Source: Trichosphaerium sp. ATCC 40318
Taxonomy: Eukaryota > Protista > Tubulinea
Length of the DNA: 64,000 bases
NCBI GenBank assembly: GCA_038496445.1
Contig: JALMLS010000516.1
Coordinates: 310,001-374,000, forward strand
Direction: 5' to 3'
Part shown: positions 48,634-52,899 of the stretch, piece by piece
How the letters are laid out: every line of letters starts with the position of its first letter
How positions within the stretch are numbered: the stretch's first letter is position 1
Translations under genes and position numbers: made by a program
The notes under the pieces: generated by a model
The model's database searches: none
What the model saw: only the letters and a program-made list of their open reading frames with translations
Told to the model about the DNA's origin: nothing

Positions 48634-49547
48634 GCAAATAATGTAACAAAATAAAATGAACAATGTACCCTTAAAATCCGTTTGCTGAAGTTACAAAGGC
48701 AGTTGATGTTTGCGATTAAATATTGTAACAGGAAGGTTATCCTATCAAGAATTGCATTGCTTAGAACACTAGTTAAGATTCACTATCAGAGTGTGCTTAA
48801 GTTGGTACAAACAATTGTGAAGCTCCGTTTCTCTTTGAAACTCATATGATTCTGCCGGCTATCGCGCAATAGTAACAACCACATACCAAAGCACTTTCCT
48901 TACTCTACAAATTATTCACTACGTGTTGTGATGACTCCACGCAGTGAAAGCTAGTATCAGTTTGCAGTATTTTATTTTTTGGTAAAATTTCGGCGAAATT
49001 TCTAAACGTTGTGCAGTCTAATAAGACGTGGTAAATTGTGGTTCGTTTACACATATCAAAGTTTGAAAGCGTTTGCAAGGGTATTTTTTTTTACAGTGAT
49101 TATTTCTGCTCTTAATTCCTTTACTTGCTTATTGTTAAGTTGCTCTTATTTTAGTGGTAGCTATTTGTTTATACTTTGCTTTTATTTCTTAGGTTGTGCT
49201 ACAGGTTGACATGTATTACTTCACACGTTTTTTTTCTCTTTTTCATTTGTCCTTTATTGTCCGAGTGCGTCCGTAGCCCCAGTACTTTAACTACGCAATA
49301 GAACATAAAATTCTGCAGCCGCCAAACGTAGTTGAGAATTTGGTGGAAATTGAGGTGTTATTTGAAAATGCTCTAACCTATTTTGTTGAACCGGTAATAG
49401 TATTTACCAGCTAGAATTTGTACGTTCGATGTTGTTAAAGGTGTTCGCAAAAAGGCAACTCACAATTATTTTCGACTAATTTCGTTCGGACTTGGGCTTG
49501 CTTAACGCCGTCAACATCAAAACCACCGTACCATTAATACAACAACA

Positions 49548-51725
49548 ATGGCAGAGAGAAATAACATGTTTGGCGAGTTAACAAGCTTCAATAAAGAGGG
49601 CTTAAACCCAACGAACACTGTAGTACACCACAACACATTTATAAACGAAGCAGGCGTAACCAGTCCAATAACACGCGGTCATGCCGATTTTGAAGATAGC
49701 ATAGAGTACTTTGACGATCCAGTAGACTTTAGAGCAAAGGTAAGCGCTCAAAGACGCTAAAATACGGCCGTTTACAATTTTAGATAAAAAAACTGGCAAA
49801 GTTAGTTAAAGAGAGCAAACACTTGGTGGTATACACTGGCGCTGGTATCTCAACCGCAGCGTCACTACCTGGTACAAATCTACAAAAAACACGTTGAAAA
49901 ACTTCCGCGTTAATCCCTGAACACCCACTTTCAACATCAAACAGCGTTGACATGATTTTTAGATTACCGTGGTCCTCAAGGAGTATGGACAATGAAAGAC
50001 AAAGGTTTAGAAGCACCAAAAAGCATTTCACTCGAAGCAGCACGCCCAACAGTACGCCAAAAACCCTTCCAAAAGCAATCGCTAACAGAACGTAAAGTAT
50101 ACTCACATGGCACTTGCTTCACTTGCCAAGGCTGGCGTATTAAAAGCAGTAGTTACAACAAATATCGATGGACTACATCTGAGAAGCGGTATAGACAAAG
50201 AAGCTGTACTAGAACTTCACGGAAACGCACACACTGATAGTACGACATGAGGCATTGGCGACAGTGCACTAACTAGTTTTTTTCAGCTGGAAGCGTCATC
50301 AACTTCGGTCAAAGCTTGCCAAAAGAAACTTATGATAAGGCAGATAAACACTCCATGAAGTCTGACCTTGCTTTGGTACTTGGTACGTACACTCTGCCTT
50401 TTTTGATTTTGCAGGCGCACGGCGGTTCGTTGTCAGTACTAATGGCCTTCCAAGGTACAAGTTTACGTGTCAAACCAGCTTGTATGTTGCCTCAAAACTC
50501 ATATGAATACAACAACGGAAATATGGTTATTGTAAACCTTCAAAAGACGCCTTTCGATGAAAAAGCAGCTGCTTGTATTCGAGTAAGTATTCAATTATAC
50601 ACTTGCAACCATATATACCTAACCGAAATTGTAGGGTTCAGTCGATGATGTTATGCAGTTGCTCATGCAAGAGCTCTCAATGGACGTAGATATGACTCTA
50701 CCAGATGGTACAAAGTTACCTGAAAGAACGCTACCGGATATTGATAGCATCCACAACGAAAAACGTAAAAACGTTGCAAAGGTTCGTGAGCATAGTGTAC
50801 GTAATTGTAGTTAACTCTATATGTCTAGCAAGTAAAGACACTTAAAAAAAAGCAAGGAGACCTGATAGTAGGTACTGTAAACAACAAGAAACGTGGATGT
50901 TTCTTCGTTGAGAATCAACGGTTTGATACACAAACCAAGAAGGTGCTGGATAAGCACAACAAAAGCGATGCACTATACGTTGCTAACTGTGCCAATGGCG
51001 ATTTTACAATTTCATCAACATGCGCCAAGCTTATCATCGGTACGGAAATTACTTAGCCTTACCCTCGCTTACGCCTACACAGAGCGATGTGAGAACTGTA
51101 GTTTTACTGTTACAGGCAAAGTTATTACAGCTATTGGAGAAGTCATAGACACAACGAACTGTACCCTACATATTTGCGTGCCAATGTATACATTAACAAT
51201 CGACAAGAGTGAGGTAGGTTTCTTGTATTTGTTGCAAGGCCAGTCTAGATACTAATCATGATATTTAAGAATATTACTGTGGCTTGGAGAACACCACACC
51301 TCCTAAAGAATATCTACACTAATAGATACAAAGCTGTACAAATTGTTTACCACAAGAGCTTGCCTGCCTACAAAGTGCCAGAAGTGTCAGAGGTATGCTG
51401 TTTTTCTTTGAGTCAAGTTTATCTTACAGTACTTAAGGATAATATTACCGAGACGTATATCACTCATATTGTTGCCAACGAGCTTCAAACAGAGTTGGTT
51501 ATACGCGAAGGTATTGGATATGCAACCACTGTACGTGAAAAGAAAATAGCAGACGATAAACTCGAGAAGAACTTAAAGATCATGGAGAAGGCCTTCAGGG
51601 CTATGGTAAATATTAAAAAAAAAGAAGCAGTAGCTAGCGGCAATTCTGATCCTAATTTTCTCAATTTTTAAATAGTGACTCCAAAAAGACGTAAGAGGGA
51701 CGACCCAACAGCATACTTGCACTGA
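49548..51725 (+). CDS. Class IV (SIRT6/7-like) sirtuin with N-terminal thymosin/WH2-like motif and C-terminal CAP-C/CARP-like domain; zinc subdomain absent
   Basis: [70 protein letters not shown]; beta-helix-like LYVANC, KLIIERCENC, LTIDKS; last exon uncertain (stop at 51671 or about 51725). Confidence 0.88.
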
Positions 51726-51998
51726 AGAAGCGCTAATGCTAATCCTCAAAAATTCTTATTATTTGTAAATAAATGGCCCACCGACACTTTTGAAAATTGA
51801 CAATTGTTCAAGTTAACTGCCGCTCTCAACACTTTTTTAACAGTCGCCCTTCGCCAGGAATAAAGTAACCACAGGCGAATGATTTACACTGCTTAGGACA
51901 ACAGTGGCATTTTAAGGGGAGCCTGCGAATTTGGAGATAAGTTAAGCAACCATTGATTTTAAGGTCAATTGTGAAATTTAACTATTTAGAATACAACA

Positions 51999-52899
51999 AT
52001 GCGTGCAGCTCTAGTTCTTTGCCTTGTAGCCTTTACATTTCTTTATTACGTCGACGCAAGGGTTTTATTTGACTTTACCACCAGAGACATCAATTCCAGA
52101 AGATGGTTTGAGGTCAGTGACACCGTCCGCTCTGTAGGTACGCTTACCGTTCGTACACCAATTCGATGAATGATTACAAGACCGCTAGCTCTAATACTTT
52201 GCGCTAGGAATGTCTTTCGCCACGATTGGAACTCAGACAGCGCAAATGTTTAAAAGAGCGATATTTTTTGCCCTATTAAATCCCCAACCAAGTACGTTTG
52301 ACCAAAACTGTTCTTCGTTCAAAAGCTGTAAAAAGTACATAACACAAACTAGAACGGTCAGGTCTTTCTTTACTTTCTCAAGTTTTATTTTCAGAAATCA
52401 CGTGGAGTGATCTTTTTTTACTTCCTTGGCTTTTTTTGAATAAAAACTCGAACAAAATTTATTTATTTTGGTGATAGATGGTGCTGCTTTTGCGAGTAGA
52501 CAACGTAATGTCAGATGGAATCTAAAGTCTTACACTCATTTGAAATTAAATATCCGAGCTCAAGGAAATAGCAGTCGATTCTCCATTGTCTTATTCTCGA
52601 AGAACCAAGAGGATGAATATCAACAATTTTTCTTATTGGACGGTGACCAGTTCACAGACGTCCTATTGCCTTTTGAAGACTTTGTAGCGTTTAGAAGAGG
52701 TACAACACGAGCTCTTGAAATTCATTTTTCTAAATTGTTGAAAGGCGTGGTTATTCCTGATGCAGATCCTATTGACACTAAACGTCTAAGAACCTTCGGT
52801 TTCCGAGTTGCTGGTGGCGTCTTCTTTGAGCCAGAAGAGAGACAATCCGGTCCTTCTTCACTAGAAATCAACACTGTGGAAGCTGTAACACTCCCATAA
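51999..52899 (+). CDS. CIA30 (NDUFAF1-like) domain protein with signal peptide
   Basis: MRAALVLCLVAFTFLYYVDA signal peptide; LFDF, WFEVSDTVRSVGMS, NGAAFAS, LPFEDFVAFRRG, QSGPSSLEI. Confidence 0.8.

Follow-up and report, generated by a model that had tools for sequence, protein, structure and literature searches.

The Rossmann domain and the cofactor loop of a sirtuin provide its NAD+ pockets and catalytic histidine. The FGE loop and the GTS..V.P stretch grip the acyl-lysine peptide between them, and the zinc ribbon is a structural element that aids substrate docking; a helical module is absent from the class IV (SIRT6/7-type) sirtuins. The Cys4 module has been treated as a defining part of sirtuin enzymes, and to our knowledge every canonical sirtuin studied has it, its mutation being reported to abolish activity. 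A requirement for the zinc module in canonical sirtuin deacetylation is stated in the literature (PMC12700824, PMC10981675), in agreement with the initial annotation of the locus described here, which held that the module is normally needed for deacylase activity. In SIRT6, R175 of the zinc domain is the anchor to the nucleosome acidic patch (PMC10104460). In the full-text literature, zinc-less sirtuin folds are described only for the SIR2_2 type (bacterial ThsA and DSR2 and vertebrate FAM118A/B), which processes NAD+ and does not deacetylate (PMC12700824, PMC10981675). No zinc-less SIRT6/7-type protein was found there, nor a measured activity for any zinc-less canonical sirtuin. SirTM was considered as a zinc-less precedent and rejected because it has a zinc-coordinating domain (PMC4518038).

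We analyzed a sirtuin gene on the forward strand of a 64,000-nucleotide stretch of the amoeba Trichosphaerium sp. ATCC 40318 (contig JALMLS010000516.1; the window, in whose numbering all positions are given), and compared its product, the window protein, with these systems. Contigs of four public transcript runs were mapped on 49400-51800; X6 and X7 derive from one sample and X1 and X2 from the other study, and mean word depth of the cDNA contigs is 42.9 and 21.3 in the two studies. The X6 contig begins with a SMART template-switch oligo followed by sequence from 49514, which identifies it as cDNA assembled independently of the genome assembly and places the cDNA 5' end at about 49514, giving a 5' UTR of 49514-49547. 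All 11 introns of the gene (43 to 91 nt, GT..AG) are confirmed in cDNA contigs, and the confirmed exons translate as an uninterrupted open reading frame of 505 residues.

Exon 1 (49548-49739, residues 1-64) carries a WH2/thymosin-like motif at 49569-49628, recognized by alignment with the N-termini of the family described below, since the exon alone has no Pfam match; its 3' end is fixed by the joint 49739|49784. Exon 2 (49784-49871, residues 65-93) encodes the first β-strand of the Rossmann fold and the GAGIS motif (49838-49852) and matches SIRT7 90-118 (E 2.4e-6), and exon 3 (49963-50051, residues 94-123) encodes the DYRGPQGVW cofactor-binding loop and matches SIRT6 64-92 (E 8e-5). Exon 4 (50098-50239, residues 124-170) holds TNIDGLH (50158-50178) and ELHGN with the catalytic H164 (50212-50226), ends in AHTD, and matches both Pfam SIR2 (PF02146, E 1.7e-8) and SIRT6 94-136 (E 6e-10). 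It is followed by intron 4 (50240-50286, 47 nt, phase 1), which lies exactly at the site of the zinc module in relatives. Exon 5 (50287-50382, residues 171-202) opens with a TG linker and continues with the equivalent of the FGE loop at 50292-50321, and exon 6 (50455-50582, residues 203-245), which aligns to SIRT6 215-250 and Sir2Tm 190-224, provides the GTS motif and IVNLQ (50529-50543). The last core helix and the beginning of a linker come from exon 7 (50635-50781, residues 246-294). Exons 8-10 (50829-51392, residues 295-449, with introns 51040-51082 and 51214-51269) encode the remaining linker and a CAP_C-like β-helix (matched by BLASTP to the corresponding region of relative P0264, E 1.5e-40), and exon 11 (51438-51605, residues 450-505) encodes a family-specific tail; exons 5, 7 and 11 rest on cDNA joints and the family alignment. 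The TGA stop (51676-51678) occupies the opening three bases of the final exon and is preceded by an intron of 70 nt (51606-51675), seen as the joint 51604/5->51675/6 in X1, X2 and X7. The parts flanking the sirtuin core are thus the WH2/thymosin-like motif and, at 50934-51392, the CAP_C-type β-helix.

The joint 50239->50287 is present in the intron-free transcript contigs of X1, X2 and X6 (three runs, two studies), which skip 50240-50286 and leave zero letters between the flanks, precisely the 47-nt GT..AG intron and spliced reading that the initial annotation had predicted. A contig of X7 has 50287 as its first aligned base, and the 11 unaligned nucleotides ahead of it are identical to the 3' end of exon 4. 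An alternative joint at 50239/50287 was not found in the cDNA contigs of the two studies; the joint is direct, and no missing Cys-rich exon is revealed at this position. In the translated exons, ELHGN occupies residues 162-166 and the stretch equivalent to the FGE loop residues 173-182, and residues 1-211 contain no cysteine.

In the alignment with SIRT6, exons 4 and 6 flank the gap and, together with the cDNA joint, bear out the proposal that the entire Cys4 module has been lost. Between the Asn of ELHGN and the Thr of GTS the window protein has 37 residues vs 79 in human SIRT6, so that the original estimate of about 45 missing residues becomes 42 when SIRT6 is the reference; with the closest relatives as reference it is about 35-43. 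The last 32 of the 37 residues align with SIRT6 DTILDWEDSLP...ITLG, and SIRT6 M136-R182 (47 residues, including the zinc ligands C141, C144, C166 and C177, all within the missing part) is replaced by AHTDT. The deleted stretch also includes the SIRT6-specific loop 167-176 with R175, and the cut that removed the zinc ribbon is a clean one, falling between the strand of the catalytic His and the FGE-type substrate loop. Intron 4 is too short to hide the module, as had been pointed out at the outset. An ORF with a paired CxxC...CxxC was not found in any frame of 49400-51800 outside the C-terminal domain, and since no intron of the gene exceeds 91 nt, a hidden or collapsed exon is excluded. The Cys pairs of the CAP_C part (ERCENC and NCTLHIC) were considered as a substitute zinc site and rejected, as they are not conserved in relatives.

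Human SIRT6 and SIRT7 are the best solved-structure matches of the core exons, and all such matches fall on SIRT6/7, Sir2Tm, Sir2Af and PfSir2, with no closeness to the ThsA type. The window protein shares GAGIS, DxR, NxDGLH, ELHGN, GTS and NLQ with SIRT6/7, and differs from SIRT6 in lacking the zinc ribbon and the 167-176 acidic-patch loop, in having Thr for Q113, Phe for W188 and Gln for the next Glu/Asp, and in carrying the WH2-like N-terminus and CAP_C β-helix in place of the SIRT6/7 tails. It resembles ThsA, DSR2 and FAM118A/B in combining a sirtuin Rossmann core with no zinc module, but those proteins never had the module, have a helical small subdomain and a seven-stranded sheet, form multimers and are NADases. 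Placement of the window protein in that group was rejected, because its core exons, and the structure models of its relatives, are nearest to SIRT6/7. By descent it is a class IV sirtuin, a canonical one that lost the module secondarily and with it one defining structural feature of the class.

The rest of the core is retained, as the initial annotation had claimed for the catalytic His and the NAD-binding motifs. The Rossmann and cofactor-loop motifs are present as GAGIST (residues 83-88) and DYRG (residues 94-97), GTS lies at residues 203-205 and IVNLQ at residues 228-232, and H164 aligns to SIRT6 H133 in a column that is 100% conserved. Conservation of at least 90% across 230 zinc-containing relatives marks out 41 core columns, and at all 41 the window protein carries the consensus residue; among them are GAGIS, the cofactor-loop D and R, N145, D147, H164, GTS and NLQ. 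In the FGE-type loop, which reads NFGQSLP, the F, G, L and P are kept and Glu is replaced by Gln. The QNxDGLH motif reads TTNIDGLH, with T144 for the Gln, and N145, D147, L149 and H150 are present. The replacement of QN by TN had been noted from the start and is real, but it does not mark decay and is not linked to the loss of zinc: Thr is the commonest state at this position (STN and TTN together account for 171 of the 292 class IV cores sampled, almost all of them zinc-containing), and we regard it as a clade trait of no bearing on decay.

Between the window and the transcript contigs there are eight coding differences, all eight synonymous (p ~5e-6 against a neutral expectation of ~22% synonymous sites). 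The gene is expressed and under purifying selection and is not decaying. Full retention of the core with purely synonymous polymorphism excludes a decaying gene and inclines us toward a working enzyme.

To place this deletion among its relatives, which were gathered by a search with exon 4 and then by searches with the relatives so found (spliced-protein comparisons were made by script), 292 cores spanning the region were profile-aligned and the residues and Cys between ELHGN and the FGE-type loop were counted. In this sample, which is biased toward relatives of the query, the zinc module is present in 289 cores (30-65 residues, at least four Cys) and absent from three (4-6 residues, no Cys). 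The zinc-less state is therefore not unique to the window protein (six residues) and extends, in these alignments, to P0018 from Arcella intermedia (five) and P0151, a EukProt transcript (four). P0018, listed in UniRef as 'Deacetylase sirtuin-type domain-containing protein', combines SIR2 with CAP_C, P0151 combines a WH2-like motif with SIR2 and is without CAP_C, and in both the module is missing at the same boundaries; identity to the window protein is 37% for P0018 and 47% for P0151, and the three share ~55-60% mutual identity over the core. Of the 41 conserved columns, P0151 retains 41 and P0018 40, vs a mean of 39.7 for the zinc-containing proteins. A zinc-less SIRT6/7-type sirtuin is thus not unique, but it is undescribed, P0018 standing unstudied in UniRef. 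Two residues beside the scar are shared by the window protein and P0018: H168 (50230-50232), in place of Tyr/Phe after HGxA, which occurs in 4 of the 289 zinc-containing cores, and Q179 (50310-50312), in place of Glu in the FGE motif, which occurs in 32 of them. The pair would fit common descent or the same compensation made twice.

Phylogenetic trees, all built without the zinc-module columns, nest the window protein among protist class IV cores, apart from the animal and plant SIRT6 outgroup. A quick core tree keeps the three zinc-less proteins separate, suggesting three losses, and the full-length family tree does not join the window protein and P0018, although joining them is not rejected by the AU test (p 0.10). 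Constraining all three together gave a likelihood above that of the free quick search (p-AU 0.61), and a careful 42-row tree, in which P0018 lies near P0151 and the window protein is unplaced, needs two losses. A claim of three independent losses was dropped on these results, since the AU tests do not reject a single origin, and we leave the number of losses suggested by the trees at one or two. The scar coincides exactly with the phase-1 intron 4, and loss of a symmetric exon would be an attractive origin; the Balamuthia homologue, the sole genomic homologue fetched, is intronless and so uninformative on intron positions around the module.

A full-length alignment of 18 members places the window protein in a mainly amoebozoan family that joins a WH2/thymosin-like motif, a SIRT6/7-like core and CAP_C. 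Its members have, in order, an N-terminal FxKxxLxxTxT motif, the class IV core, a helical linker, the CAP_C β-helix and a conserved tail with ...REGxGYATTxREK, and the window protein conforms to this order. The C-terminal 211 residues of the window protein match the CAP_C regions of relatives with E 1.5e-40, and Pfam recognizes CAP_C directly in P0264 (E 1e-11) and P0021 (E 1.6e-10), with Pfam SIR2 matches also among the relatives and a Pfam Thymosin match only in P0195 (E 1e-5). With single exons of the window as queries, only exon 4 reached Pfam SIR2, the C-terminal exons being too short, and PDB searches with exon 5 and exon 8 gave no significant match. The fusion proteins P0021, P0264, P0005, P0164, P0011, P0013 and P0287 share the three parts and the tail at 35-39% identity over full length and have the same STN/TTN motif in the core; 16 of the 18 aligned members have CxxC...CxxC, and only the window protein and P0018 are without it. 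Named members of the fusion are amoebozoan (Arcella intermedia; Pyxidicula operculata, P0013; Flabellula baltica, P0287), and a Balamuthia protein, which is shorter, combines the N-terminal motif with the core and lacks CAP_C. Identity to the window protein is only 37-39% for the closest retrieved relatives, and the searches turned up no orthologue from a closely related species. A profile of the relatives and exon pieces, a weak query in which MAFFT misplaced the pieces, retrieved no near-identical protein, and a metagenome scan with exon 11 returned 248 pattern matches, none of which was confirmed. A full-text literature search found no study of the WH2-like/SIR2/CAP_C family. The reverse order, CAP_C then thymosin then SIR2, occurs in other protist proteins (P0154, P0163, P0166, P0195 and P0297).

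Structure models were made with AlphaFold for the zinc-less relatives P0151 and P0018. The P0151 model (pLDDT 90.0, pTM 0.82, with pLDDT 90-96 across the junction) superimposes best on human SIRT6 (TM 0.80, rmsd 1.2-1.5 Å). In the P0018 model (pLDDT 86.8), which contains the core, the helical linker and the β-helix, SIRT6 is again the top match, and the junction is less confident (block 91-100, pLDDT 66). For each of the two models, the 50 best fold matches consist of SIRT6 and Sir2Tm/Af.

What can be said plainly is that the deletion, the expression of the gene, the selection on it, the retention of the core and the descent from this family are demonstrated. The explanation we rank first, at somewhat below an even chance, is that the window protein, an expressed and maintained class IV sirtuin that has lost a Cys4 ribbon of ~42 residues and has kept its scorable NAD-binding and catalytic residues intact, works without zinc as an NAD+-dependent enzyme, probably a lysine deacylase. 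Its targets may be chosen by the flanking WH2/thymosin-like and CAP_C modules, which would point to actin-linked, non-chromatin substrates, and retargeting away from nucleosomes could make a zinc domain of the SIRT6 acidic-patch type dispensable. Because class IV sirtuins have no helical module, deletion of the zinc ribbon would strip the protein down to little more than its Rossmann core and the two substrate loops, and deacylation would be the most likely reaction because the peptide-binding loops stay conserved. Counting against this explanation, no zinc-less canonical sirtuin with a measured activity was found in the literature, almost no small domain would be left to seal off the acyl-lysine tunnel, Gln replaces the Glu of the FGE motif, and the P0018 junction is modeled with lower confidence (pLDDT 66). 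A broader form of this explanation, possible but doubtful in our estimate, is that the zinc ribbon is dispensable for class IV catalysis in general, and that the three zinc-less proteins are Rossmann-only, metal-free deacylases of ~200 residues that arose once or twice in Amoebozoa, were long kept beside zinc-containing paralogues, and shed the module when the WH2-like and CAP_C parts redirected them from nucleosomes toward substrates linked to actin.

Several other explanations have to be weighed against a zinc-independent deacylase. Judged by the DNA only, a deletion that falls exactly at an intron resembles a missed exon, and the gene might then be an artefact or dying: an assembly collapse, a wrongly spliced gene model, an isoform skipping the zinc exon or a pseudogene. 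The same joint and no other is seen, however, in independently assembled cDNA contigs of two studies, and the 47-nt intron in a locus with no longer intron than 91 nt and no Cys-rich ORF leaves no room for such an exon; decay is already contradicted by the intact reading frame, the uniformly synonymous differences and the complete set of conserved positions. We consider an artefact or dying gene extremely improbable. More weight attaches to an NAD+ (or ADP-ribose/O-acyl-ADP-ribose) binding pseudoenzyme without catalysis, whose Rossmann core would act as a sensor regulating the actin-binding modules or as a scaffold. Loss of a module reported as needed for canonical activity speaks for this reading, and purifying selection with conserved NAD-contact residues would be equally expected of a ligand sensor. 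In a pure binder, however, nothing would hold the catalytic His and the substrate-loop residues in place, yet all three zinc-less proteins have kept them at ~55-60% core identity. We judge a pseudoenzyme unlikely, if not to be dismissed; the sequence does not separate it from a zinc-independent enzyme, and we lean to the working enzyme.

The protein might instead be a mono-ADP-ribosyltransferase or an NAD+ glycohydrolase, its opened active site no longer holding acyl-lysine, with actin or actin regulators as possible targets reached through the WH2-like and CAP_C parts. The retained NAD-binding residues and the His and Asn would fit either activity equally well as they fit a deacylase, the known zinc-less sirtuin folds ThsA, DSR2 and FAM118/SIR2_2 process NAD+ (PMC12700824; PMC10981675), and 'mono-ADP-ribosyltransferase sirtuin 6' is among the names given to relatives in their source annotations. 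The sequence and the models of relatives are nonetheless closest to SIRT6/7 and not to the ThsA type, and a plain NADase would have no need of the acyl-peptide-binding FGE-type loop and GTS..V.P stretch that are still conserved; we hold a change of reaction to be rather improbable. In the order of mechanisms it would come after the zinc-independent enzyme and before the NAD+-binding sensor.

A natural SIRT6/7-type protein without the zinc module, in which the rest of the active site is under purifying selection, offers a test of whether zinc serves the chemistry or rather the stability of the fold or docking (to the nucleosome in SIRT6). If active, the window protein would represent a minimal sirtuin core of use for engineering and inhibitor work and would connect sirtuin chemistry with the actin cytoskeleton of amoebae; if inactive but ligand-binding, it would be a clean case of a sirtuin turned sensor.

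The synonymous differences noted above lie at 50169, 50330, 50519, 50946, 51147, 51156, 51467 and 51524. They belong to two transcript haplotypes, each recorded under its own organism label (A and E), which differ from the window at three and five sites, all of them synonymous; the two labels probably stand for one or very close species. Five of the 11 introns between 49740 and 51675 begin with GTAC, and several have CTAAC/CTAAT-like branch motifs near the 3' end. Met505 closes the last exon of sense codons, and retention of the intron 51606-51675 would add 21 codons before a stop at 51669-51671. A neighboring gene begins downstream at 51999, ~320 nt past the sirtuin stop, and its product has a signal-peptide-like N-terminus (MRAALVLCLVAFTFLYY...).
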